Assembly (NCBI GenBank): GCA_009103225.1 | Contig: RHPI01002533.1 | Span: 709,368 to 773,367, forward strand | Direction of reading: 5' to 3' | DNA length: 64,000 nucleotides | From: Chlorokybus atmophyticus | Taxonomy: Eukaryota; Plantae; Mesostigma and Chlorokybus algae | In this document: in pieces, positions 3,645-24,645 of the stretch | How positions within the stretch are numbered: position 1 is the first letter of the stretch | Layout of the letters: every line of letters starts with the position of its first letter | Program-made: the position numbers and the translations under genes | The notes under the pieces: model-generated | Database searches by the model: none | Seen by the model: the letters and a program-made list of their open reading frames with translations, nothing else | Told to the model about the DNA's origin: nothing

Positions 3645-7934
<4,290 letters not shown>

Positions 7935-8809
7935 CATTGACTGGTGCAACTGTTGCAGTGCAAGTCATGGCGTGGAGGCTATCCCTGGTGCATGGTTACG
8001 TTTGCCACTTGCTCAATGCCCCACCCTTCTTACACCCATTGACAGTTGTTATGCATTAGTCAACGATATTTGCATGTTCACTGCAGCGTTACATGGCAAT
8101 TTGCTGCAGCTTGGTGTTGATGATGATGTTGCTGGGACAGTGCTTGAGCCGGGGACATGGCTGGGTACTGCGCCAAAGACATGTACCCAAGACACTATGA
8201 AAACTTACAAGATCTCTTGCCATGCTCGAACAGGTTTGCGGTAGTCTCGGCGCACCTTGCAGTGTAATTCAGAATGTGAACATGACGCCAAAAAGCAAGT
8301 CTTGTTCTCTTCGTGCTAGCTCATTTGATATGTTCCGGAATGGTTGTCAAAGGACACGACATCGTGAAACATTGGAGGGAATATTTCATGTTAATGCAGA
8401 TTGTTTTCAGTGTTTGATATGTGCATTGACAGATGTGTACATAGCATGACCTATTCGGCACACAAAACCTGGGCCGGCTTGTACGAAAGCCCTCTGTGCG
8501 GTCGCTGGCACAGATTTGAATGTACATATTCTGGGACGAAGGTGGGGCGAGGTGACTCCAACCCATCCATGAATGCGCGTGGCTGAGGAGACGGGCACAC
8601 AAGACTCAATCTCAACTTGAGCAGCCTCCACTTGCAAGGGGTGGCGCCTTCCCAAATGCTTACTTTAAACACTATAAAACATCATTTGCCATATGTGCTG
8701 CAATCGCCGCGCATTGGCTTGAATTGTGTGAAAGTGGTTGCAGGACGCACAATGTCAGCCTCGCCTCCAACTCGCCCATGACTGTGCACAGACACCCCCC
8801 CCCCCCCGT

Positions 8810-8923
8810 NNNNNNNNNNNNNNNNNNNNNNNNNNNNNNNNNNNNNNNNNNNNNNNNNNNNNNNNNNNNNNNNNNNNNNNNNNNNNNNNNNNNNNNNNNN
8901 NNNNNNNNNNNNNNNNNNNNNNN
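8810..8923. other. Assembly gap (N) flanked by poly-C
   Basis: Seen directly. Confidence 0.99.
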
Positions 8924-9473
8924 NCCCCCCCCCCGGTCGCGCGACAACACACTGGAACAATGACAGCGTTAAATAAAGGATTGTCCATGCGCCCAACCCG
9001 TTTCCCGCGTCATGGTACTGAGCAACAGGACACAGCAACTCCATGCAGCCAAGCAACAAGGAGCTCTAAGAGTCGAGACAAGGCCCAGTGTGACTAGTAG
9101 CCAGAGAAATCGCATCTCTCTGATAGAGCTTTCATTATTGTCAGCTGATCAGTTGAACACAAGGAATACAGGTTGCCTGATACGCTCCAGGCGGCAGACA
9201 GTGACACTAGCCAATGCTAATCTCCCATTCCTGTTAAGACTAGCTGCAGGCATGGCTTCTGGCGGCTCTAATTGACAGGCAGATTGGCTGGCAAAGCAGC
9301 AGCACCTATAAGGTCTCCAAAGCGGAGCAAGAACAGCCTTTGAGGTTGCCAGTGGCAGCGCTTTTTCACATTCTTCACAAAGCAAGCATCCACCGCCCCA
9401 CTAACAAACCCCATGACCAGGCTGTGACCAGGGTTAAACAGCAGCAGACAGCTGCCGCACAATTGCAACGCTG

Positions 9474-10329
9474 CTATTCCTCCGGTTCGTCTTCCTCGGG
9501 AACTCCTCTCAAGTACAGCACATTGTTACACCTGCATAATTTACCGCACCAGTCAACAGAATCATATGAAGTGTACAAGTATACGTCGGTGGACTGGAAG
9601 CCGCAAGTGAACTGCGGCACACTGCGTACCTTATCAACACTTCGCCAAGGTTGCCGGAAAAAGTGCCGTCAATGTACTCCTCAGTGCTTGCCAGCTGCCA
9701 AGTGGTTGGCTCGTCAAGCGATCACGAGAGCCAGCATTACAACAATGAACAGAGCACATAAGCAACTTCGCTAGTCTGTTTACTGGTGCTGTAGCAAGGA
9801 CTCAACATGCATGATGTAGCGTACTCGTCAGACACAGCCTGCGGTACTGACCTGCAAGTTCATGTAGGCGTCGACTGACACCAAGTAACCTGCACGACAA
9901 AAAGGCAGTGTATAAGATAGCGGAGCAGCTAGCCTGGACCAATGCATATCTCATGTGCAACGGCACCCACCTTTGTATTCCATCCCCCACTTGAGCTTCA
10001 CTATTACGGGCTTCCCAGTCAAGTCGTTGAGGAAGGGTTTGGGGTTCACTGGGACGGTCTGCACGCAGTAACAGCGTACAACGCACCGTGTCACAATGTT
10101 GGCATTACGTCCAGCCAAACAGTGCAATAAGATTGTATAACTTGCCGACCTCTTAGTGACACTGGTGGTGCGAAAAGCTCAGGCATGCAGCATGTCAACG
10201 TGCATGCAGCTTCCCACAGTGATTCGCTCTTTTATTACAAATGCGTGGCTAATTGCATAACGCACATCAAAGACTGCCGCCTCTGGATATGATGAGCAAG
10301 GCAAATGTGAAACTTGACCATACCGCCAT
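9474..10329 (-). CDS. SNRPF: Small nuclear ribonucleoprotein SmF (5 coding exons; not in the ORF track)
   Basis: Spliced product: MA|[30 protein letters not shown]|[12 protein letters not shown]|[22 protein letters not shown]|[18 protein letters not shown]. It has Sm1 and Sm2 motifs with the SmF-typical NPKPFL and RCNNVLY, and all junctions are GT-AG. Confidence 0.97.
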
Positions 10330-10432
10330 GGGTGGGCGCTCCGTCCGTCGTCGTCGCCGCCGCCGCCGCCGTCCTGACCGCCGCCACGGTTCGGAGCAGG
10401 TAAGGAACAATTGCTGGCAGCAACAGTTGGCT

Positions 10433-10469
10433 TAGGGTTTTCCACACCCGAGACTCCGGACTGTGGGCC
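10433..10469 (-). promoter_or_regulatory. Telo-box (AAACCCTA, 10433-10440) and site II element (TGGGCC, 10464-10469) upstream of SmF
   Basis: Exact motifs about 100-140 bp upstream of the SmF ATG. The telo-box plus site II pairing is an established plant promoter module. Confidence 0.55.
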
Positions 10470-12235
10470 GGCGCCAGACCCAAGTCCCACAACCTCGTTC
10501 ATAACATGTTGAATATGCACAATAATCTTCGGCTGCGATTACCATATTCAGAACCTCTGAGCATGCCATGCAGTGCATGGTGAGTGCATGAGTTATTGTG
10601 TCTCATGTCAAAGTCCACCAATGCATTCAAGATGTCAAAATTGAGATATTGTGACCACACTGTATGATTATCGGTGTTGAATGTTTCCACAATATGCGTA
10701 TGTATGTGTGAATTGTACAATGGTGTTTACATGTATAAGTGTGTAAGAGCCGAATGTCTCATTTATGCCCCATCCCATACATGTTACAACACGTGTGTGT
10801 ACACGTGCAGAGATCATCTGGAATACATGGCATGCTACACTCGCCTTTATCTGGCTTCGGAATCATGCATATCGCTCGTGGCACGAACACGTATATGCAT
10901 GTATACATGCATACACACGACCAGTGGTAAGCAAGCAGCATTACAACTTATGTCATAATAAAAGTAATCTTTATTCCAATATGATGTTTATAAATATACG
11001 CACGGTAGCACGATCCACTCACACTGTACGATGCCGAATGTGACATGGTGTCAAATGTCAAGTGTCACATGTAATTCAGGTTTTATGCACATCACGTGCC
11101 AGTCTACAACATATTAATTGCTTTGCGATAAAATCGTAATAAATAGATAGACGGGATCTAAAATCACGGCGCACAACCGCAAAAAAGGGAGCGCGTATAA
11201 AGAAGAGCACGATATTAAAAACTAGAGCCGCTCTTACTTTTGCTATTAAGTTGCTTGCAGCTTCGGTCAAGTTTTTCTTCTTACTAGATTTTTAATGACC
11301 GTATGCGGCGTGTATATTAAAAAGATGGCTCGAGCTAGTGCCGACGAGTGGCTCGAGCCATGTGTCGCATAAGCAGCGGTAACACTGAAAAACTTTTAAT
11401 GGGGGGTAAGTTGCAGGCATGTAAGGTTGTTTTGTGTCGCAGAGTATATGCGTAGCAAGGTGCATGCTGTGAGTAATTTGTATAGTGTATCAAGGTTGTT
11501 AATCTACACATCGTGCACCGTGTGGGCACTGTAGAGCAATTGGTGTCCATATGAGAGCAGACATAGATTGAGAATTGAGACATCTTTGTTAGAATTGTGT
11601 ACAGTGGCTGCATGGGACAAGATCTTACATCACATGACACAGCAACAAACGTGTCTTGCCCGACCACTGGCCCTCGCCTGCCTTTCTCCAAGCATTTCCC
11701 TTACCTCCCAAGCATGCATGCATGCGCGGATAATATAGGGAGGACAGGACAAGTGCCAGTTACTATCATGCTCACATGCACTCCTTGCTTATCGTGTGCA
11801 TAGAGTATGACATATCGCACCACATTGCAGATGCCAGCCGAGAGGAAATTCTGATTTCCAATCGAGGTGCTAACGGAGCTTGGTTTAGCGGATGCGCAGC
11901 TGGAGTTCTTTTATTTATATAATTACGCTTCTCCCCTGAAGCTGTAAATGTGGCTGATGACGCGCGGAATCTGCTTGGACGTTTGAATTGAGTCAGCCGA
12001 CAATGACGCTATAATTTGTGGCTGTTTGATGGATTATTGGATTGATAGCTAACTCCATCACTTTTTCGTGCAGGCCGCATGTGCAAGATGCTAGTGCGAT
12101 GGAGCCGATGCTTGCAAGAAGCATAACCGGCCAAACATGATTAATGTTTACATGTTTAATTGTTGATCTCGTTGGTGCTGTTGTCAGTTGTTACAGCGCC
12201 ACCCGCATTGCAGCATATTCTGCACGCTTCCTTTA

Positions 12236-12270
12236 CAGACAAGAGGCCCGAGGGGGTTTCACTGCGTCAG
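12236..12270 (+). repeat. Left bipartite terminal inverted repeat
   Basis: 23-bp outer block followed immediately by TCACTGCGTCAG. Confidence 0.92.
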
Positions 12271-12569
12271 TTTTGATGGTGCCGCGCTGTGTGGGTTAGT
12301 GCGTGTCGTGCGCTGTCGCGGTCAACAATGAGGTCCCTTGGGTCGCCGTTGGAAGCGTTCGTTGTCGAATGTCGGCGTCATGCAGTGGTTTCATGTGCAG
12401 TCTCGTATAGACGCAGTCGGCGGATGTTGATGCTATGTGCGGTCGATGCGCGTGGGTGAAGCGTGAAGTTTCGAAATTTGAAAACTGGGAATTGTGTCGG
12501 TTTGTGTGCGCAGTTGTTGCATTCTGGGCGGCGGTGTTGGTGTGGCGGTAGTGGCGGTGTGTGGGAGGT

Positions 12570-15500
12570 ATGGGCAGTGAGGGTGTGAGCGTGGGGGGGG
12601 AGTTTGATGACGAGCACGAGGTGAGCCTGCAGGAGCAGTGTGGTGAAGGTGATGGCAGGCGCGAGCATGCAGAACAGGCGGGGCAGGCAGAGCGGGCAGA
12701 GCTTGCGGAGCAGTCTGAGCGCCAGGGCGAGGCTTCGCATGCTCCCGGTCGTCGCGGAGCAAGGCCTCGGGCTGCTGGTGAGTCTGGTGCGACCTCTCCA
12801 GGTGCTGAGGCAGCCAAGAAGAAACGGAGGCTGCAGCAGCGGACGGCTTCCAAGAAGTACAGAGGGAATCGCAAGGACGTTATCGAGGCGCTGCGAGCTG
12901 ACCTCAACCTGTCTGATGGCTTGAACCACGCAGAGGTGTTGAAGGCCGTTGCGACGTCAGGGCGATGCTGGAGGTTGGGGTCGGACCGGCGTACGCTGTG
13001 TATGCTGCAGGTGAGTTCGTATGCATGTGGATGTATACGTGCCGTGAGAATGTGTGCTGCTTGCGGTGTGTGTGATTGAGGCGTTGACTGAGCTGATTGC
13101 AGGGAATCCATCCTGAGTGGCGTCCGCCTGGGTTTACAGGATTGCAAGAAGATATTGCCAGGCGTGCTTCGGTCCCATACATCAGCCCGCCTCTTGGCAG
13201 TCAATATGTGGTAATTTAGTGTTAGAGTGCGTTATGTTTGTGAGTCGACGTGCGGTTTGGGAGCTGGCAATTCGTGTCTGATGACGTGCTGTGTTTTGTA
13301 GAGTGGGCGAACCGACAATCAAGAGAATGTGGACCCAGCTGGAGTGGGCGGTCATGTAGCACGTTCGCCCGCTAATGGGAGTGCGCTGCACACCAGTCAA
13401 CTGCAGCGTCCATATGATAGCAATGTGCAGCCTTCCCAGCCAACATCTCAGCCTAGCCAGAGTTGTGATAACAGTGTCCTGCATGGTTCTCACCATATCG
13501 GAGGCCAGAATCATGCTCGCCCGACCCACTATGGGGGAGGTCCGCGAGCGCAGTTTGTGCGTCCGTATACATACCCCTAGTGAACTCGCAGTAGATTAAA
13601 CTGTGGCAATGTGCTGCCTTAGGTTTTGAAGATCCCCATTCTGGTGATGGCAGTGTGCCAGTGTTCAACATGAGTTTGAGTGCGGACAACTTGTCTTCAG
13701 TGCAGGTCAGCATGTGTCTGTGCATTGTGTGCGTGTGTGCGTGTGTACAAAAGAAGTATGCGACGTATGCTGCATGCATGTGTGTGTGTGTGGGNNNNNN
13801 NNNNNNNNNNNNNNNNNNNNNNNNNNNNNNNNNNNNNNNNNNNNNNNNNNNNNNNNNNNNNNNNNNNNNNNNNNNNNNNNNNNNNNNNNNNNNNNNNNNN
13901 NNNNNNNNNNNNNNNNNNNNNNNNNNNNNNNNNNNNNNNNNNNNNNNNNNNNNNNNNNNNNNNNNNNNNNNNNNNNNNNNNNNNNNNNNNNNNNNNNNNN
14001 NNNNNNNNNNNNNNNNNNNNNNNNNNNNNNNNNNNNNNNNNNNNNNNNNNNNNNNNNNNNNNNNNNNNNNNNNNNNNNNNGGGGGGGGTCACATGCAATG
14101 CATCAGTGGTGTGCAATGTGGTATGCCTATATGCTTACACTGGTAGAATGAACATCAACTTGTCACAGGATGTGGTGGCTGCGTGGGAATCAGATAGGTG
14201 TGGACTACTGCAACAACTTGAGAGTGTGTCGAGTGCATTGCTTGCTGCGGAGCTAGCTAATGAGAGCATGAAGCATGCGTTAGGCCAGCACCAGAACCAA
14301 GGCAGTGGAAGCAGTCAGTCATCACAAGTTGGCAGCGAGCCAAATTCAGTCCCGTCTCAACCCAATGAAGACTCTGGGTGTCCTAGTTGTGATCTGCCTG
14401 GGAGTATTGCAGCAGAGCAGCAGAGGCTACAGCAAGAGCAGTTAAGGCATGCCAGGGAGGTTGATGAGGCTGCGCATGAGTGTGAGCGCTGGCGAGAATA
14501 TGGAGTGCATCTGGAGCAAGAGCTGCGGTTGTTGCGCGCAAATTCTCCAAGTGTTGAGGAGCTGTGCACTGAGACAGTGTTGGCGAGGGAGAAGACCTCT
14601 GGGGAGGTTAGTGGTTTGCTGGGTCTGTTGGCAGAGCTCGAGGGCGCGCTGGAGGATGTGCTGCGGGAGCTTCATGCCTGTCAAGACCAGAAAGAGGTTA
14701 GTACACAACCATTACAACTTGATGTGGCAGTGCTTGCATTAGCTTGATGTGCAGACCTGTGTGTGCCTGGCAGCTGTTGAGGGTGGCGAAGGATGATGCC
14801 ACCAAGCTCGCCAATGACTTGGGTGCGCAGCTAAGAGAGCAAGAGCGTCGTGCGTCAGTAGCAGACCCAGAAGTGCATCAAATTGAGCAGGTCAATGGCT
14901 TAGTGCAAGCAATCAGTAGAATGGTGGGTCCTGCATCTTGATACAGCATTGTTTGACAAGGACCGCTCAACACAGAATGTGCACACCTTGCAGGCTTGTA
15001 GGAGTGTCAGCGATGAGGCCACCACGCGTGCCAACATGGTGGCTGCAAGGGTGATTGAGTTGGAGCGCTTGGATGCAATTGCGAAAGCTCAGGTGTGCCA
15101 GCTGCAGATGGAGTCCCGCACACAGAGAGACACGATTGAGGTGAGTGCATTGAGCTGTGCTGTGTGCTGGGAACGGATAAAGCAGTCTGCGTGTGCTGAA
15201 CATATGCTAGATGGCAGCAACTGACCATGGTTGTTGCAGGTTTTGCAGCGTGAGGTCATGGATGCTGTGGACGATGCGAGGGAGAATTATGCCCGTGCGC
15301 AAGAGGCTGATAATCATGAGGCACAGGCCTGTTTACACATCCAGGACCTGCAGTGCGAAGTGTCGAGGCTGCAAGACGCCCTGGATGCCCTGAAAGACTC
15401 ACTATCACCTAGCGGGATTTCTTGGCAGCAGCAACTTGGTCGAGAGGTGGAGCATATGGCCTTGCTGAAGCAAGTGGCTGGTGCTGTTGGCCATGCTGAG

Positions 15501-18500
15501 TTGCCAGCGGAGCCTGTGAGATACATCGCGCACCAGTTATGGCTCAGTAGTGTGCCTGTCAAGATGAGTGACGTTGGGACACTTTACAAGCTGACTCACC
15601 ATCAGCGTGGCAACTTAGTGCGCACTGTGAGGCGCGTGCTTGGGAACGCCCTGTTTGTGGTGACTGGCTCCAAGCGCAACGGGACTCTGCTGCTCAGGAG
15701 CTGGGTGGACCCAGCCGTGTGCATGCTGGGCGCGGTGCATCATCCTATGGAGCGGAGGGGAGAGCAGGAAGGCTTGTCTTCAAAGACGCTTGCCTACATC
15801 CTGCAGCTTGTCAAAGATGAGGCCAAGCAGAGGTCTGAAGTTAACAGCAAGACATGCGCTGATGTTAGATTTCTTAATGAGGAGAAGGAGTTGCAAGGCT
15901 GCCACCCAGATCTGGTTCGCCTATTTGAGGCGCTGACAGGGACGCCACATGTCCATGACAACATGAAGCAGTGGGAGAGGGTGAAGCACTTGAGAGCGAT
16001 GTACATGCTGAGCGGTGTGATATACATAAGGAACTCGCACGCATACTCGCGTCTTCACGTGGCGTTGGGAGAGGCTGTGGAGGCTTTCAGCGGGTCTCCT
16101 TCACTGCAGATGATACTCAATCGATTGGGGGTGTGCATTAGCAAGGCGACACTGGATCGCCACATCATGTCGCGCAACATCGAGGCGAGCAACAACCCCT
16201 GCCCTGTGCAAGCAGGAGGAGAACAGTTGGTAATTGCGACTGTGGACAATTGGGATTTCAGATGCCAAGGACAATTGAGGTACAATGGCGGCGCGGATAA
16301 AGACTTGCACTGCACCACAACCCAGGTTGTGATACCCAAGCCTGCACATGCGGGACCAATGCGTATGGAAGAGGTGCCCGCTCAGAGGTTCAGGACTCTG
16401 TCACAAGCTGGCATGTCTCCACCCACCACAGTTGAATTGCCTCCACAGCTGCCCAGGCCTCGCACTGATATGGCACCATCTGCAAGCGAGCAAATTACAA
16501 GTCAGACACTTAGTGAAGCTGACAGCTTCGCTAGCTTTCAAGTGGCGTTGCACAACACTGTGTGGAAGAGGATGGAAGTGCCTGCACTCAATCAGAACAA
16601 GCTGAAGAATGTTCTGGCGCACCTGTTAGGGGGTGGTGACGCTGCGTCTGCAAGTCAGGTGTATTACATGCCGCTCTTGCCCTTTAACCCTGACAAACCA
16701 GACCACTTGAAGCTTGCTCTGTTGAAGTTGCACGAGCATCTTCGTGTTGATCTGTCCGGCTGCAAGGTGTTAGTGGGGGGTGACCAGAAGACTTTCAGCC
16801 TCATGACGACACTCAAGCACACAGAACCAGGGTACTGGGACTGGCTCCTCCGTCTGCCAGGGGACTGGCACGCACTGTACAACTTGTTACCTGTCCTCTT
16901 CAAAATCTACTGGGATGCCGGACTGGACGAGATGTGTGTGTGTGCTGGTATCCCTAGCAGCACTGCGCGCAACATGCTAGCAGAGGGTTCCAATTGAAAG
17001 CGCATGCACGCGTACATGTTACAGTGCTGGGAGGGCATCTACAGGTACCAGCTCAAGGTATTCATGCAGGCTCACCCAGATACACTGGAGGCACTTGGCA
17101 TCTTCAGTGTGGAGGACATCGACCTCAATGACCCCAGACACTGCGCTGAGTTCTTCGCGTATGGTGCCCACAGAGCTGAGGAGGATGCCACTTGGGCTTT
17201 GTGGTGGCACTTCACCACCCGTGATGCTGCAGCCTATCTTGCGTTGTACCTTGCCCTGCGCACCAGCCAGTGGGACTTGCATGTGGCATCATACAAGGCG
17301 CTGTCTCCGCTATCCTTCGCATGGGATAGACCACATTACCAACGCCTCATGAGTCAGCACCTGGTGGACATTCAGCAAATGCCACCAGATATACTAGAGC
17401 AACTGCAGCAGGGTGCGTTCACAATCAGCATCACTGGCAAGAGCAGTAGCAATGTGGCACTGGATGAGGCGCATGAGTGCTTGATCAACAAGGATCTGAA
17501 GAGCTGTTTGACCAGACCAAATGGAGATTACCTGACACGCAGGACAGCACATGTCGCTCACCGAGCTGTGGGGCTCAAGAAGCTGTTGCACGTTCTGCGA
17601 GTCAAGGAGGACGCTGCGGTACCTGAAGACACAGTTATAGTACCCAGCGACAAGACCGCTATTGATGTGGAGGCCATGCTTCATCTGCTTGAGACATCTG
17701 GGGTGCTTAATGTCCACCGCGAAGAGCAACTCGTTCATCTCGTGAGAGGGAAGCCAGTCCATCCGCAGCTGCTGACCTGGGCAAGCACTACGCAGTTGGA
17801 CAAGACCAGTTCACGTTGTTTGTCAAAGCGGTGCATTGCAACGAGATGACTGGAGTCAACATAGGCAGGAGGTTTGGACTAAAGACTATGCAAGTGAAGA
17901 AGCAAGTGGTGCAGAAAGGGAGGGCATTGCATCGCATGCAGAAAACCAAGACACTGATCTTGAAAAAGTTGGCGAAATCTGGTGCACCGGTGGAGGCTGT
18001 GATGGCCTCTTATCAGGCTACCCCAATGGCTATCTTCACAGAAGAGGGAGACATGAGGAAGGGAGACAAGGCCAAGTTCCTCAACCTCCTGAGTACCGCA
18101 TGCCCAACAGCCCAGGTGCTCAGGCACCCATCAGGTGTGCAAGCCATTATCGCTGAAGGCATGTTCATCATCAACAAAGGCCCCAGCACAGGCGTGGTCA
18201 CAATGCGGGACTATCTTCTTCAGATACTTCGCACTTGCTTGCTCCCTCGCTTGTTCAACCCAAGCGTCCAATCCCTGCACGTGGTGTTTGACGATCCTGC
18301 ACACGCCACAGGCGTCAAAAGCAGCCTGCAGGCTTGCAGAGACAGTGGTGCTGGCCGATCAACCCGCACCTTGACTCTGGAGAGCGAGGTCCCCCGGTCC
18401 TGGAGAGATCTGCTTGCTGACCGCACTTTGAAGCGTAGCCTGTGCTGCCTCTTGACAACGCACTTACCTGAGTTGGTATCTCCTTATCTGAGGCTTGGAC

Positions 18501-19777
18501 AGTCCTTCATTATTGCAGGAGGGTCAGACTCCCCTGCCTACAAGGACAAGGCGAGAGTGGTAGCATGCACTGTCAACGGTGTCCAATCCTGTGAGAGCAG
18601 TGCATATCAGAGCAACCATGCCGAAGCCGACAGCAGAGTTTGGCTCCATGCTCTGCTGTGTGGATACCCAACCGTTCTCATCTACTCCCCCGACACAGAT
18701 GTGTCGATCATAGGGCTGTCCGCTCTGGAGCAGTGGCAGTCTCCAGAGCGCAGAGTATACATCCAGCTTGCGACCAACTCCCACTGCACTGCCAGGGCTC
18801 CCTTCATCGACTTGTCCGCCCTGTACACTCACTTGGCTCAGATTCCACAACTACGCCACATCACACCAACACTCCGTGCCAAGTTCATGCTGCTATTCTT
18901 CGCGGGCACGGGATGCGACTATACTAGCTATTTTGCAGGCATCAGCAAGACCTACTTCTGGTCAGATGTACTGGCAAGAGAGACAGAGTTCATCACACGC
19001 TGCGCTGACCTCAACGAGGTCGAGTGTACAGCCGTCCTGATGCGCCTCATCGGATGCGCCTACTTCGCTAAGCACAAAGTAGTTTTCCCAAACTACAACA
19101 GTGCTGCCAGCATCTTCTACGACACCAACGGCATCACAGCCTCGACGGGGGAACTGCCGTCACTTCGTAAATGGCTGCACACAATAGCACAAGGCATATG
19201 GGAAAAGACTGGCGACAGCAAGGAAGACATGCCATCACCTTCAGCGCTGGAGCTGCACGCGAAGAGGAGCAACTGGGTGATCGCAATGTGGCTGCAATCC
19301 TGTACTGCTCAGTTGCAGCTGCCACCCCTTTCAGAGTATGGATATGTACTCGTGGACGGGCTGTTTAAGGCCCAGATGGACACTCCGGAGACCATCGAAG
19401 CTGCCAAGCTCAGAGCGCAGCTCTTGTTGCATGGCTGCAATTGCAAGAAGAATAGATGCAACACAAGGCAGTGCAGATGCAGAAAGAATGGCAGCAGATG
19501 CGGCCCCAGCTGCGGCTGCCTCAACTGTCAGAACCTGGTAGACACCCAAGCCCCCACGCAGGTGGAGCCCACATCAACACAACCACCAGCTGAGTTCACA
19601 GACGATGATGACAGCAGTAGTTCAGAATCAGAGGAAGACCCAGAGGCAAATGAAATTAACATGCGTCCCACGCAGTTTGTGGATCCAGATCAGTCGTCAG
19701 CAGATGAGGAAGACGAACCCACATTCGACGTCCATGCATGGTTGGACCATGTGCAGGATGCAGACATAGCCTGGTAG
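12570..19777 (+). pseudogene. Academ transposase polyprotein (bHLH-like / coiled coil / DDE transposase / XPG-like nuclease / CXC finger), 8 exons, about 2,070 aa, with one in-frame TGA and one -1 frameshift
   Basis: Exons 12570-13010, 13103-13210, 13302-13539, 13623-13705, 14169-14696, 14774-14890, 14994-15140 and 15240-19777 splice in frame at GT-AG sites. Transposase motifs: ATVDNWDF, GGDQKTF, LPGDWHALY, VALDEAHECLINKDLK. Nuclease motifs: LHVVFDDP, NHAEADSRVWLH, YSPDTDV, GTGCDYTSYFAGISK. Finger: GCNCKKNRCNTRQCRCRKNGSRCGPSCGCLNC. Lesions: TGA at 16995-16997 and a frame change near 17760. Confidence 0.85.
13795..14080. other. Assembly gap inside intron 4 of the transposon gene, between (GT)n and poly-G
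   Basis: Seen directly. An extra exon hidden in the gap cannot be excluded. Confidence 0.98.
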
Positions 19778-20061
19778 CACATAAGAACACACTCCGCGTG
19801 CAAATGATAGGCTTCCTGGAGCTGTTCCACATTGTGTATACAGTGCATGCAATCTGTGTGCCTCGTGCCAGAACATGAAGTGCATACATTGAACCAGAAC
19901 ATGATCACAGACGGGCACTGCATTGCACACAACGCCCACGCACACCACAACACAAAACTGTTGCACACAACACACAGGTTGACATGTACATGGCTAGGCA
20001 AACACACACTGCATCTGCAGACACATGCAGACCAGCACAAGGCACAACTGCACAAGCAGCC

Positions 20062-20782
20062 TCAGCCATCTGCCTTATCTGGCAGCTGCACGAAGTCGTG
20101 TGACCCATGGTAGTCACAGTCGCAGGAAGTCGGGGGCATGGCTGGCAGTGAGATCATGCCAGAGCTCATGTAGCCGCTTGCCCCTGCAGCCAGATCCAGC
20201 CAGGCCAAGCGCTTGCCTGCACAGGGGGACAAAACACACCCAGAAATAATGAAATCAGTTGTGCAGCTTCACGCATGCAGATTAACTTACAATCACACAG
20301 TGCAGCAAAAACAACGCTATCTGATGTTAGCCATGCAATACCTGGGCCAGGGTCGTCCCCCATCTGAAAAAGTGCCCGGGCCTGTGGCACACCATGAACC
20401 AGGTGTTCTACGCTCACAATGTCCGGCAGCACTGGGCCCCACGCATCAGCGCGTGGTTCCTCAGCGTGGCGCGACACTGCCAACTGGAAGCCATTACAGA
20501 AGTCCAGGTGGAGGGTCTCGAGGCCGCCGTCTTCAAGTTCACGCGGCCACACCATCATCCCCCGCAGAGTCACCTGCATGCACATTCATAACTTACAATA
20601 AGCACAAGGCCCCACACATCATCGCTCACAGGCAAACTGAAATACAAGCATACCTGACGCATCATGGGAAAGGCGAAGTTGGCGTCGCGCCCAGTCGGAT
20701 ATGCCGGAGGCCCACGCTCAGCAGAAGCGCAACCCTGCACACGCGCAGGACGACGATCGCCCACACCCCCCCCAGCACGCAT
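20062..20782 (-). CDS. Putative second gene of the transposon: orphan protein of 171 aa, 3 exons
   Basis: Exons 20782-20654, 20573-20342 and 20216-20062 splice in frame (CAG|gtatgc..atgcag|GTG; CCAG|gtattg..gtgcag|GC) to a TGA. The ATG lies in GCCACCGCCATG. No family recognised. Confidence 0.55.
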
Positions 20783-21216
20783 GGCGGTGGCACAATCGCA
20801 ATCTCTCCCCACAGGCTGCGACCACGCCGCTACATCGACTACCGCTTGCACAGCCGCGCTGCCCTGGCTCCCAGCAGCACCGTTGCCACCGCTCCCCTCG
20901 GTGCGCACACCGCGGCCGCCTCCACGACCGCCCCCGCGGGCGCCCTCAGCAGCAACGCCAGCCACACCGCCGACACTGCCGCCGCTTTCAACCTACCACC
21001 TCTCGCGCCAAAACCCTCGTTCCTGCCCGTGTTGCCAGCAAACACCTGCGATGACGCCACTCAAAGCCGACACAGACTGCCATTGCTCTCACATCATCGA
21101 CTGTCATCACGTCATCAAGAGCCGACACACACAGCTGAACGGTGCGCACAATCGTTTCACGTCGCGCCGTTATGACGCCATCAGCGTCACAATCGCATCG
21201 CAGTTGATCAGAATGC

Positions 21217-21262
21217 CTGACGCAGTGAATGGCAGGCGGAACCCCCTCGGGCCTCTTGACTG
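21217..21262 (-). repeat. Right bipartite terminal inverted repeat
   Basis: Outer 23-bp block (21240-21262) and inner block CTGACGCAGTGAA (21217-21229), separated by about 10 nt that are absent at the left end. Confidence 0.92.
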
Positions 21263-23680
21263 TTTACCATTTTTTACTGCTGCTTGTAACCGCATGCCGC
21301 ACGCTCCCGTCCCGTTGAGTCCTGCTCGCTTTCTCATTATTCCGGTGTTGCAGACCCCGTTGCATTGTGTTTGATACAACGCATAAGTTATTGATAGTTG
21401 AAGAGAGTTGAGTTGCTAGGTTGTTGGAGCTTCTTTTTCCTTCCGTTCAGTTGAGGCGTAGCTCTTATAACGTGTTTCGAAAGGTTGCCAATGTTGTCAT
21501 CGATTTGCATCTGTTTACAGATAATTTGTAAGGTGGCTTGATAGGCCACCTTACGAATAATACATCCTCTACGTGCAAGCTTTACAACTCCAGCTCCTGG
21601 TGCTGCAATTATCACTATTAAGTCCCACTAAAATTCAACAACTCCGATTGTGAAATGCTCGCGTGCTGACCAACAAAGATGCTGTTAATACTTGAGGCAT
21701 CGCTTACCTCTACCACAACCACCTTCAAGTCAAACAATTGTGTGCACTCAAAGTTCACCTTACTACCATTATATGGATTTGGGTGACACTGAAAAACATC
21801 TATTGTTTTGTTAAGTTGTCGCTGCTTATGCAAACATCCGACATGCATGTAATGGCTGGTGTCACAATCGCTCGCGTTCTTCATAACTCAACACATGTGG
21901 TGGGTACATCCGCACCTCCAACTTGCCATTTCATCCGCAGTCGTGGCAAGGTCAACAGCTTAACCAATGTTTGCATGCATATGGTTGCCACTTTGAGTGG
22001 CAAACAAGATGGGCTCCCAAAGTGTTTTCATATGATCAATAATGATAATAATAGACTCATGTTGATGCCATGTTGAACGTATTTCCTCTCACCCGTAAGA
22101 GCAATGTTACAGAGTTGGCCCCCGCCTCGGATTCATACAGCTCGCGTTGAAGGCCGCGCTCCGCTAGTCCACTTGTAAGGGTGCGTAAGGTCAATTACAA
22201 GCACAATATAGCGGCAACAACGGCGGTCGCTAATGGAAAGGCTTCGATCATCCACTTTCGTGGCCTATTTAATGCTTGGTGCCAGCGGCCACATGGCTTA
22301 CACAAGATTTTTCCATAGTATGGATATCCTAATCCTGATCCATGAACGCAGTCATAATGAAGTGCAAACGCTTGCACTTTGAACATTGTCAAATGACGCC
22401 ATTTGTTAATGCTTGGAGATGATCTCCAACGAGAAATACAACACACGAAACAATCGAAATACAATGAGTCAATGTTATTAATTTTGCACCAGCATTGACA
22501 ACTATTGTACCTTTTGTGTTACCTCGTGTTGCACAATAGGTAGTCCATGCATGTATGGCTCTTATTAACATTAAATATAAACAATAATTAATACAAAAAA
22601 TAAACAGCAGCAACATAATATGTATACATTTCAGCATTGATTGCTGGTATGTGCATGTGTGTTTCCACTCACTCTGGTGATAAAAGTTTTTTTTAACGTA
22701 CGCGCAGTTGTCGTTGCAGCAGGTACTGTTATTGCAATGGCATGCAGATGGTGATCTACCATGCGCTGTGGACAACTGAATGTGGAAGACTTCAGAGAGA
22801 TTTACCCTTGAAGGCAACTGCTGCATAAGCCTATGGTGCCAAAAGCATGCATTGCAACCAGAGCAATAGTGTGGCACACCATCACGTTGCACTTGTCCAC
22901 GAAGTGAAAATGCTAAACCTACAAGCAATACACGGATATACCAATACATGGGCTCACTACTTCCAGATCTGAGGGATACCTACCGGAAGGCTACATTTTG
23001 TATTGTACATGCATGTCGTGGTATTCATCATATCATTTTTCTTCATAGATGTTAATTACCCTTGATTTAATACATCGACTCATGGTATGCTTGCCTTTAT
23101 ATTTGCACAATTATTTCAATTGCTGATACTGGTGGAGTGTGAGCTGCTCAATAGAATTACGAAGCCATGCACAGCTGATACAAGAAAGCCATCATTTTGG
23201 TTTGATGTCACTCTACTATTGCTGTGATTATAGCTATAGCAATTGCATGAACAAGCGCTGCGCGCTTGAATTTGCAGACGCCAAGAAACAGTTGACAGCA
23301 TGGGCCAGCGAACCCAAAGTTTGTGCCAATCTAACTTTCATAGTGAGAATGATCTACTGAAGGTTTGCTGTCTATTAACCGACATTAACAAATGTGCGCT
23401 TGATACGGTTAATAGGTTTTTGCAGCCATACATGCGGTTCAATAAGCTAAAATCCTTGCCTTGATGTGGCAGACACATTGCGCACTTGGAGTTTGCCATA
23501 CAGTGTGCCGCTGCAACCGTGTCACCATTGTATTTGTGCATTGCAGCTTGTGTGTTGTGTATAATAATGCAGGGGTCTATGCTCACTTAGAGGCAGCAGT
23601 TGTGTTAGCAGGCCTTCTTGGGTTGCAAGTGCGCAACTAGCCACGCTTCTTACTGCATTGACAACCACCGCGACTGGCCC

Positions 23681-24251
23681 NNNNNNNNNNNNNNNNNNNN
23701 NNNNNNNNNNNNNNNNNNNNNNNNNNNNNNNNNNNNNNNNNNNNNNNNNNNNNNNNNNNNNNNNNNNNNNNNNNNNNNNNNNNNNNNNNNNNNNNNNNNN
23801 NNNNNNNNNNNNNNNNNNNNNNNNNNNNNNNNNNNNNNNNNNNNNNNNNNNNNNNNNNNNNNNNNNNNNNNNNNNNNNNNNNNNNNNNNNNNNNNNNNNN
23901 NNNNNNNNNNNNNNNNNNNNNNNNNNNNNNNNNNNNNNNNNNNNNNNNNNNNNNNNNNNNNNNNNNNNNNNNNNNNNNNNNNNNNNNNNNNNNNNNNNNN
24001 NNNNNNNNNNNNNNNNNNNNNNNNNNNNNNNNNNNNNNNNNNNNNNNNNNNNNNNNNNNNNNNNNNNNNNNNNNNNNNNNNNNNNNNNNNNNNNNNNNNN
24101 NNNNNNNNNNNNNNNNNNNNNNNNNNNNNNNNNNNNNNNNNNNNNNNNNNNNNNNNNNNNNNNNNNNNNNNNNNNNNNNNNNNNNNNNNNNNNNNNNNNN
24201 NNNNNNNNNNNNNNNNNNNNNNNNNNNNNNNNNNNNNNNNNNNNNNNNNNN
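23681..24251. other. Assembly gap (N)
   Basis: Seen directly. Confidence 0.99.
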
Positions 24252-24645
24252 NCCCCCCCCTCCCTCAAGCGCGCTTCTCCTGCCCTCTCCAGCGTTTATG
24301 CAGATGGGCACCCACCACCCACCACACCATCAGTTGCATTGCACATGGTTGACATAGCAGCGAGCCCCCTATTCTAGTTGTGCTTGGTTGTTGGAGTGGT
24401 GAAGTTATACTGCATGCAATTGCTTATTGGTATTTGTAATGTGCTGTCTATTGATGTACTGGGCCCTCCGTTTTACCCTAGTGCTTATTTGCGTAGTTTC
24501 TTGGTCTAGTTCTACCCGCCGGTCTATGTTTAAGTACCGCGTGCGCTACTGCGGGTGCCCACTGCTGCACAAGCCATACGAAGGAAAGCGTGCTACCAAG
24601 GTGATTGCCACATTGTAACTGAGCTGAGGTAATCGTGCTTGCTAT

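Follow-up and report, generated by a model that had tools for sequence, protein, structure and literature searches.

Does the genome of a streptophyte alga carry a resident transposon of the Academ superfamily, and if so, is the copy complete? The question is raised by a stretch of 64,000 bp from Chlorokybus atmophyticus (assembly GCA_009103225.1, contig RHPI01002533.1, positions 709,368 to 773,367 of the forward strand), referred to here in its entirety as the window, in which an element with transposon-like ends occupies positions 12236–21262. To our knowledge, Academ is among the least studied of the eukaryotic DNA transposon superfamilies, with no member having been biochemically tested. 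The literature treats it essentially as an animal and fungal group (PMC5751038, PMC4438587). The element described here is very probably a resident cut-and-paste transposon of the genome of this alga, belonging to AcademX, the Academ lineage that encodes a nuclease. Its gene lies on the + strand and would encode a predicted N-terminal extension followed, in this order, by a DDE transposase, a Rad2/XPG-family nuclease, and a CXC finger.

Ends and extent of the element

The original prediction was of a complete element with CA..TG termini, a 22/23 match between its terminal inverted repeats (TIRs), and a flanking TTTA at either end. Direct reading, a repeat search, and shuffled sequences all bear out the ends. 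The 22 matches in the outermost 23 positions, between 12236–12258 and 21240–21262, are seen both by direct reading and in the repeat search of the window, which scores the pair as 24 nt with 96% complementarity. Alignment of the ends shows that the TIR resumes with 13 identical bases beyond an 11 nt indel, after which similarity ends. With this indel allowed, the full arms (12236–12270 and 21217–21262) share 34 of 35 aligned positions. On the left, TTTA is followed from 12236 by CAGACAAGAGGCCC..., and on the right, ...GGGCCTCTTGACTG runs to 21262 and is followed by TTTA, giving the element 5'-CAG...CTG-3' termini. When the 23 nt terminus was used as a pattern with up to 3 mismatches, two sites were found in the 64 kb, these being the two ends of the element; the chance expectation from 100 dinucleotide shuffles is 0.00.

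A TIR one base longer outward (A/T), with a target-site duplication (TSD) of 3 bp, was considered and rejected, as the flanks would then be TTT and TTA, which differ. The CAG boundary with a 4 bp TTTA duplication is therefore the consistent solution. No further copies of the element or of its ends are present elsewhere within the 64 kb window. A 19 nt piece of the TIR searched against metagenomes returned a single unrelated GC-rich match (L008) without a CAG terminus.

The nominal length of the element is 9,027 bp, a value that depends on the estimated size of an assembly gap. The prediction that the element is complete stands with respect to both of its ends, but not with respect to its open reading frame (ORF), which contains a nonsense codon and a frameshift, nor to the internal sequence, which contains the gap. 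This stretch is confirmed to be a real copy of a cut-and-paste DNA transposon that is structurally complete and coding-defective.

Lesions in the main exon

The in-frame TGA at 16995–16997 aligns with W in the relative P0014 or with F in the relatives P0002 and L001. Relatives with a continuous frame move from window frame 0 to window frame 2 at 17750–17773, the switch falling at residues 221–228 of P0001 and at residues 352–363 of P0014. Both lesions are in blocks that are conserved in the relatives, and the uninterrupted transposase frame that would mark an autonomous element is not found. A short intron at either the TGA or the frame switch was rejected, the only GT..AG options being 27–38 nt and the stop being within a conserved block. 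As assembled, the copy is not coding-intact, its frame being broken once by a nonsense mutation and once by a −1 frameshift. It cannot make the full protein because of these two lesions, and could move only with enzyme from an intact sister copy.

The DDE transposase

All three of the protein modules that had been proposed from the letters, a DDE-type transposase, an XPG-like nuclease, and a Cys-rich finger, were recovered. The first of these is recognised from a weak match to the Pfam family DUF6589, from intact D, D, and E motifs, and from an RNase H-like fold in a relative. The first D is in VDNWDF (D at 16245–16247), within the family block (V/I)DN.D. The second is in GGDQKT (D at 16782–16784), within the family block (V/A)GD.KT, and is followed by PGDWH at 16857–16871. 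The E is in LDEAHE at 17460–17477, corresponding to the family block LDE.HE. All three acidic blocks are conserved across the alignment and are intact in the window.

A HMMER scan of 1.84 billion representatives identified 480 relatives at E≤1e-3, with 56 of these at E≤1e-10. All six of the long relatives that were checked contain DUF6589 above the Pfam cut-off. A word-index search with the 588-residue transposase piece gave no match, an outcome that comes from the length window and from the word index and does not mean that relatives are absent.

Because the window protein is broken, the close relative P0017 (Logan run SRR14092359), which is 28–39% identical to the window pieces, was modelled in its place using a 47-row family alignment. 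The model has a predicted local distance difference test score (pLDDT) of 79.5. In structure it is closest to the P element transposase of Drosophila (Z 12.7 over 375 aligned residues), followed by Hermes (Z 9.5), ISCth4, RAG1 (about Z 7), Tn5, and retroviral integrases; every one of these top matches is a DDE recombinase with an RNase H-like fold. Foldseek alone is weak for this model, with Hermes as its best match at E 0.0095.

The nuclease and the CXC finger

The nuclease piece, 653 residues long, matches 15 proteins at 26–32% identity across most of its length. Invariant columns in the alignment are FDD, E.D (EAD), SPDTD, and G.D (GCDY), together with an E/D position in the first strand. 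These columns make up the acidic set known from FEN-type nucleases, and all of its residues are intact in the window. The structural model (pLDDT 70.8) resembles EXO1 (Z 15.4, 264 residues aligned), FEN1 (Z 14.0, 257 residues), XRN1 (Z 12.7, 342 residues), GEN1 (Z 12.1, 245 residues), and Rad2/XPG (Z 12.0, 258 residues), with model residues 84–505 covering the matched enzymes from residue 2 to about residues 290–312. The Foldseek top rank for the same model is Xrn2/Rat1, therefore the safe label for the domain is a Rad2/XPG-family, FEN-like PIN 5' nuclease. As modelled, it shares with FEN1, EXO1, GEN1, and XPG/Rad2 the fold of the catalytic core and the acidic metal-binding positions. In contrast to these enzymes it is fused to a transposase and has no detectable profile similarity to them, and its likeness to the Rad2/XPG family lies in the fold and the active-site residues only.

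The CXC finger is downstream of the nuclease, scores above its Pfam cut-off, and is conserved among the aligned relatives.

Relatives with the same architecture

At least 20 of the retrieved proteins carry all three of the window pieces, colinear and in one polypeptide. The long ones among them span 1256–2252 amino acids (aa) and include proteins from Branchiostoma lanceolatum (XP_066282530.1) and Owenia fusiformis (CAH1775834.1). A protein from Mytilus coruscus (CAC5420144.1, 1417 aa) has all three pieces as well. Two eukaryotic contigs from ENA assemblies, L001 and L002, have a homologue of the nuclease-CXC portion directly downstream of DUF6589 ORFs and on the same strand, and every piece of these aligns colinearly with the window gene.

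In L002 the ends of the element are also present. This element occupies positions 7066–13829 (6.76 kb) and has 440 nt inverted repeats at 98% identity, with the termini CAGTCC...GGACTG. It is flanked on both sides by TGTA and contains three consecutive ORFs of 648, 181, and 968 aa, which follow the window gene colinearly and whose proteins are about 30% identical to it. L002 is a second, independent instance of CAG termini with a 4 bp duplication. Terminal repeats and TSDs were also sought in L001 and in three further contigs, L005–L007, where no clean ends were found. A Pfam scan found no helicase domain in the ORFs of the element or in 13 relatives.

The Owenia fusiformis protein (P0036) and the animal relative P0105 have an OTU-like cysteine protease domain upstream of DUF6589, which the algal element does not have. 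Contigs L005–L007, from the JGI metagenomes 3300060284 and 3300060285, are 60–95 kb long and contain colinear transposase-nuclease-CXC arrays.

Superfamily assignment

Two lineages of Academ have been distinguished, with AcademX encoding a nuclease and generating 3–4 bp duplications and AcademH encoding a helicase and generating 9–10 bp duplications (PMC10045372). AcademX is credited, as cited in PMC10045372, to Kapitonov and Jurka 2010 and Kojima 2020. The window element has TIRs, an XPG-family nuclease with the transposase in one long protein, a Cys-rich finger, and no helicase, and duplications of 4 bp have been observed twice, as TTTA in the window and as TGTA in L002. These are features of AcademX, and the animal relatives share the exact order of modules seen in the window. 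AcademH, found in fungi and animals, presumably has the same transposase family, but differs from the window element in its helicase and in its longer duplication. From known AcademX the window element differs in its host, a streptophyte alga, and in its transposase, which groups with Klebsormidium and not with the sequences known to be from animals. Its gene also has a predicted extension at the N-terminus, about 543 aa long and with at least six short introns, for which there is no counterpart among the relatives compared.

DUF6589 is tied to Academ by circumstantial evidence: Basidiomycota have the most DUF6589 clusters, and fungal Academ elements reach their greatest abundance in the rust fungi (PMC5751038).

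Several points weigh against the assignment to a resident AcademX element. The DUF6589 score of the 588-residue piece is 24.5 bits (E 1.3e-5), which is below the Pfam cut-off of 27. The nuclease piece has no match to the Pfam XPG families (XPG_N/XPG_I) at E up to 0.1, and a profile search of solved structures with the nuclease alignment gave chance matches only. The TSD length and the boundaries rest on one filled site here and on the distant relative L002. The introns of the N-terminal region are ab initio predictions only, and the roles of the nuclease and of the CXC finger are inferred. In addition, the element was compared with Academ as described in publications, so that the proposed superfamily name is drawn from its architecture, from the length of the duplication, and from family kinship.

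The best structural match of the family transposase being to the P element, with Hermes next, raises the alternative that the element is not Academ but belongs to a different DDE superfamily (P-like, hAT-like, or Kolobok-like) in which a FEN/XPG-like nuclease was captured independently. The comparison of the element with Academ by published description leaves room for this. However, P and hAT elements produce 8 bp duplications, not the 4 bp seen here. The element also has no sequence-family match to P or hAT and no THAP or BED domain, and across the element and its relatives the Pfam scan detected DUF6589 and no P, hAT, or Kolobok family. Kolobok does make 4 bp duplications, but these are TTAA-specific (PMC9587614), whereas those found here are TTTA and TGTA. 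A fused nuclease together with a 3–4 bp duplication is, in turn, the published hallmark of AcademX (PMC10045372). An origin in another superfamily is therefore unlikely, and assignment to AcademX is preferred.

Proposed mechanism

In the proposed mechanism, the DDE domain would bind the ends of the element, cut the 3' (transferred) strands, and join them to the target with a 4 bp stagger. The fused structure-specific nuclease would cut or trim the 5' strand at the ends. By analogy, this could be likened to the role of TnsA of Tn7, which is a separate second-strand nuclease. DNA binding and multimerisation would be provided by the CXC finger and by the basic, coiled-coil N-terminus. The element offers defined termini and catalytic motifs with which the cooperation of a DDE transposase with a fused structure-specific nuclease can be probed.

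Host and green-lineage grouping

One survey lists Academ as restricted to animals (PMC4438587). In a screen of 1007 genomes of the green lineage, for which an Academ profile was among those used, recently active clusters were reported from seven superfamilies, with Academ not among them (PMC12973397). Among the papers searched, none mentions Chlorokybus together with Academ, nor is Academ mentioned in the supplements searched for the Chlorokybus genome paper.

The closest matches to the window protein include two EukProt predicted proteins of Chlorokybus atmophyticus, P0016, which is the best match, and P0038, at 42–49% identity (for P0038, 49% over 75 residues). With identities of only 42–49%, these two proteins belong to other, diverged families. 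Also among the close matches is GAQ93396.1 of Klebsormidium nitens, which is on scaffold L003 and covers the transposase half.

A maximum likelihood tree of the transposase core was made from 46 rows and 572 columns under LG+C20, leaving out the long-branch pair P0052/P0182 and rows of fewer than 300 residues. In this unrooted tree, a branch with support of 100/99 separates the window, Klebsormidium nitens, P0017, and L005–L007 from the 40 other rows. The rows that are known to come from animals, among them Sycon, Mytilus, Branchiostoma, and Owenia, all lie on the opposite side of this branch. A quick preliminary tree, in which the short proteins of Chlorokybus were retained, groups them with the window sequence (99). 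Contigs L005–L007 cluster tightly with Klebsormidium nitens and therefore probably come from Klebsormidium-like algae. Within the group of six, two rows have a known green-lineage origin. As the root is unplaced, and with two of the six rows known to be green, the tree supports a separate transposase group common to two streptophyte algae, Chlorokybus and Klebsormidium, and does not prove vertical descent. The suggestion in the original prediction of a green-lineage branch of the superfamily is thus supported by the tree and by the literature. With this element, a group of transposons known mostly from animals reaches into the green lineage. The Chlorokybus copy, which has clear ends and a clean footprint in an early-branching streptophyte, broadens the host range of Academ, as do the Klebsormidium relatives.

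Most of the identifiable relatives are from animals (Mytilus, Branchiostoma, Owenia, and Sycon), as might be expected if the sequence were foreign DNA, brought in by contamination with an animal contig or acquired from an animal very recently, rather than a member of a resident green-lineage family. Yet identity to the animal proteins is just 25–38%, the proteins closest to the element belong to the Chlorokybus atmophyticus proteome, and the 100/99 branch has the window sequence on the Klebsormidium nitens side, opposite all rows known to be from animals. The element is also embedded in a window of similar G+C (about 0.49–0.54 for the element; 0.36–0.56 for the window, which is mostly about 0.5), and an NSUN2-like host exon is 4.7 kb upstream. 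A foreign origin is very unlikely, and residence of the element in the algal genome is the better reading.

It is possible, as a tentative extension of this, that the elements form an old and separate AcademX clade in streptophyte algae (Chlorokybus, Klebsormidium, and their kin), with its own basic, coiled-coil N-terminus and host-type introns, and with green-lineage inheritance rather than recent acquisition from animals. If this is true, then AcademX is older than the split between plants and animals, or else it made an ancient crossing between kingdoms. Chlorokybus, with several diverged families, would then be a natural system for the study of a DDE transposase with a fused XPG-type nuclease.

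There is also a consequence for annotation, as some of the predicted genes of Chlorokybus and Klebsormidium are transposon fragments. An example is GAQ93396.1, a 'hypothetical protein' on the 5203 bp Klebsormidium nitens scaffold DF238446.1 (L003), which is an AcademX-like transposase half cut by the end of the scaffold. This scaffold starts with GCAGACAG, which resembles the CAGAC terminus of the window element and may be a chance occurrence.

N-terminal exons and the assembly gap

Upstream of the main exon, six predicted exons are joined by predicted phase 0 GT-AG introns of 70–99 nt and by one intron that holds the assembly gap. They would add about 543 aa, containing acidic and Gln-rich repeats, KKKRR, and coiled-coil-like segments. 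The N-terminal exons have no match in Pfam and no similarity to any of the fetched relatives, and a bHLH/bZIP-like identity for this region has no family support in Pfam. The exons and ORF pieces were searched separately, and X-joined pieces served for tree building only. Exon 1 contains a 27 nt tandem repeat at 12654–12721 (2.5 copies, 75% matches), which encodes a AEQAGQAERAELAEQ-type acidic and Gln-rich stretch.

The gap is flanked on the left by (TG)n-rich, microsatellite-like DNA and on the right by a G8 run, with no coding features. At 14168/14169, 80 nt past the G8 run, there is a good acceptor, ttgtcacag|G. The exons nearest to the gap, 13302–13556 and 14169–14696, are both phase 0. 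This is compatible with a single intron of about 612 nt across the gap that fits the reading frame, although continuity across the gap is not provable and there may be a hidden exon or a mis-join here. The long ORFs that the ORF listing draws across the N run are artefacts.

That this is a domesticated host gene derived from an Academ transposase, with the inverted repeat and the TTTA flanks being coincidental, is scarcely credible: it would suit the predicted host-like short GT-AG introns in the 5' third of the gene and the intact catalytic motifs, but the ORF has a nonsense codon and a frameshift within conserved blocks, the 22/23 inverted repeat, not expected by chance, directly adjoins a perfect 4 bp duplication, and the distant relative L002 has the same kind of ends.

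Table 1. Features of the Chlorokybus atmophyticus element, with positions numbered from the first base of the window.
Feature	Position	Strand	Basis
Left TSD, TTTA	12232–12235		Direct reading; same letters as 21263–21266
Left TIR, begins CAGAC, 22 nt + 13 nt	12236–12270	+	Reading, repeat search, pattern search, end alignment
Predicted exon 1, 147 aa; ATG, acidic/Gln-rich repeats, basic KKKRR; GTGAGT donor at end	12570–13010	+	Ab initio prediction
Predicted exon 2, 36 aa; AG acceptor, GT donor, phase 0	13103–13210	+	Ab initio prediction
Predicted exon 3, 85 aa, low-complexity Ser/Gln/Pro; GTGCGT donor at 13557	13302–13556	+	Prediction
Assembly gap, 286 N, in intron-like TG-rich DNA	13795–14080		Direct reading
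Predicted exon 4, 176 aa, coiled-coil-like	14169–14696	+	Prediction
Predicted exon 5, 50 aa; preceded by 77 nt GT-AG intron	14774–14923	+	Prediction
Predicted exon 6, 49 aa; preceded by 70 nt GT-AG intron	14994–15140	+	Prediction
Last exon, intron-less, broken; transposase, nuclease, CXC finger, acidic tail	15240–19777	+	ORFs, alignments of relatives
DDE transposase core, DUF6589 kin	15950–17600	+	Pfam, alignments, fold of relative P0017
In-frame TGA inside conserved block	16995–16997	+	Alignment with relatives
−1 frameshift interval, between transposase C-terminus and nuclease	17750–17773	+	Alignment with relatives
Rad2/XPG-family (FEN-like PIN) 5' nuclease domain	18065–19330	+	Alignment, model, structure matches
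Tesmin/TSO1-type CXC finger	19430–19534	+	PF03638, 24.5 bits against cut-off 23.5
3' internal region, ORFs on both strands	19778–21216		ORF listing, Pfam
Right TIR, closes GACTG, 11 nt insertion relative to left arm	21217–21262	−	As for left TIR
Right TSD, TTTA	21263–21266		Direct reading

The 3' internal region and surroundings

The 1.4 kb between the main exon and the right TIR contains ORFs that include 20213–21175 (+), 20166–20585 (−), and 20570–20965 (−). On neither strand do the ORFs of this region have a Pfam family or a relative among the fetched sequences, and a second gene here has no support in Pfam.

An Rfam scan of 9000–24500 found no RNA family. Just downstream of the element, G+C falls sharply to 0.36 at 22001–24400, which looks like low-complexity or AT-rich repeat DNA. 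Long overlapping ORFs on both strands at 23522–24377 have no Pfam match. Upstream, about 4.7 kb from the element, the host exon at 6989–7516 (+) matches the NSUN2 pre-PUA (E 2.5e-13) and PUA (E 4.6e-14) domains and is part of an RNA cytosine-methyltransferase-like gene.

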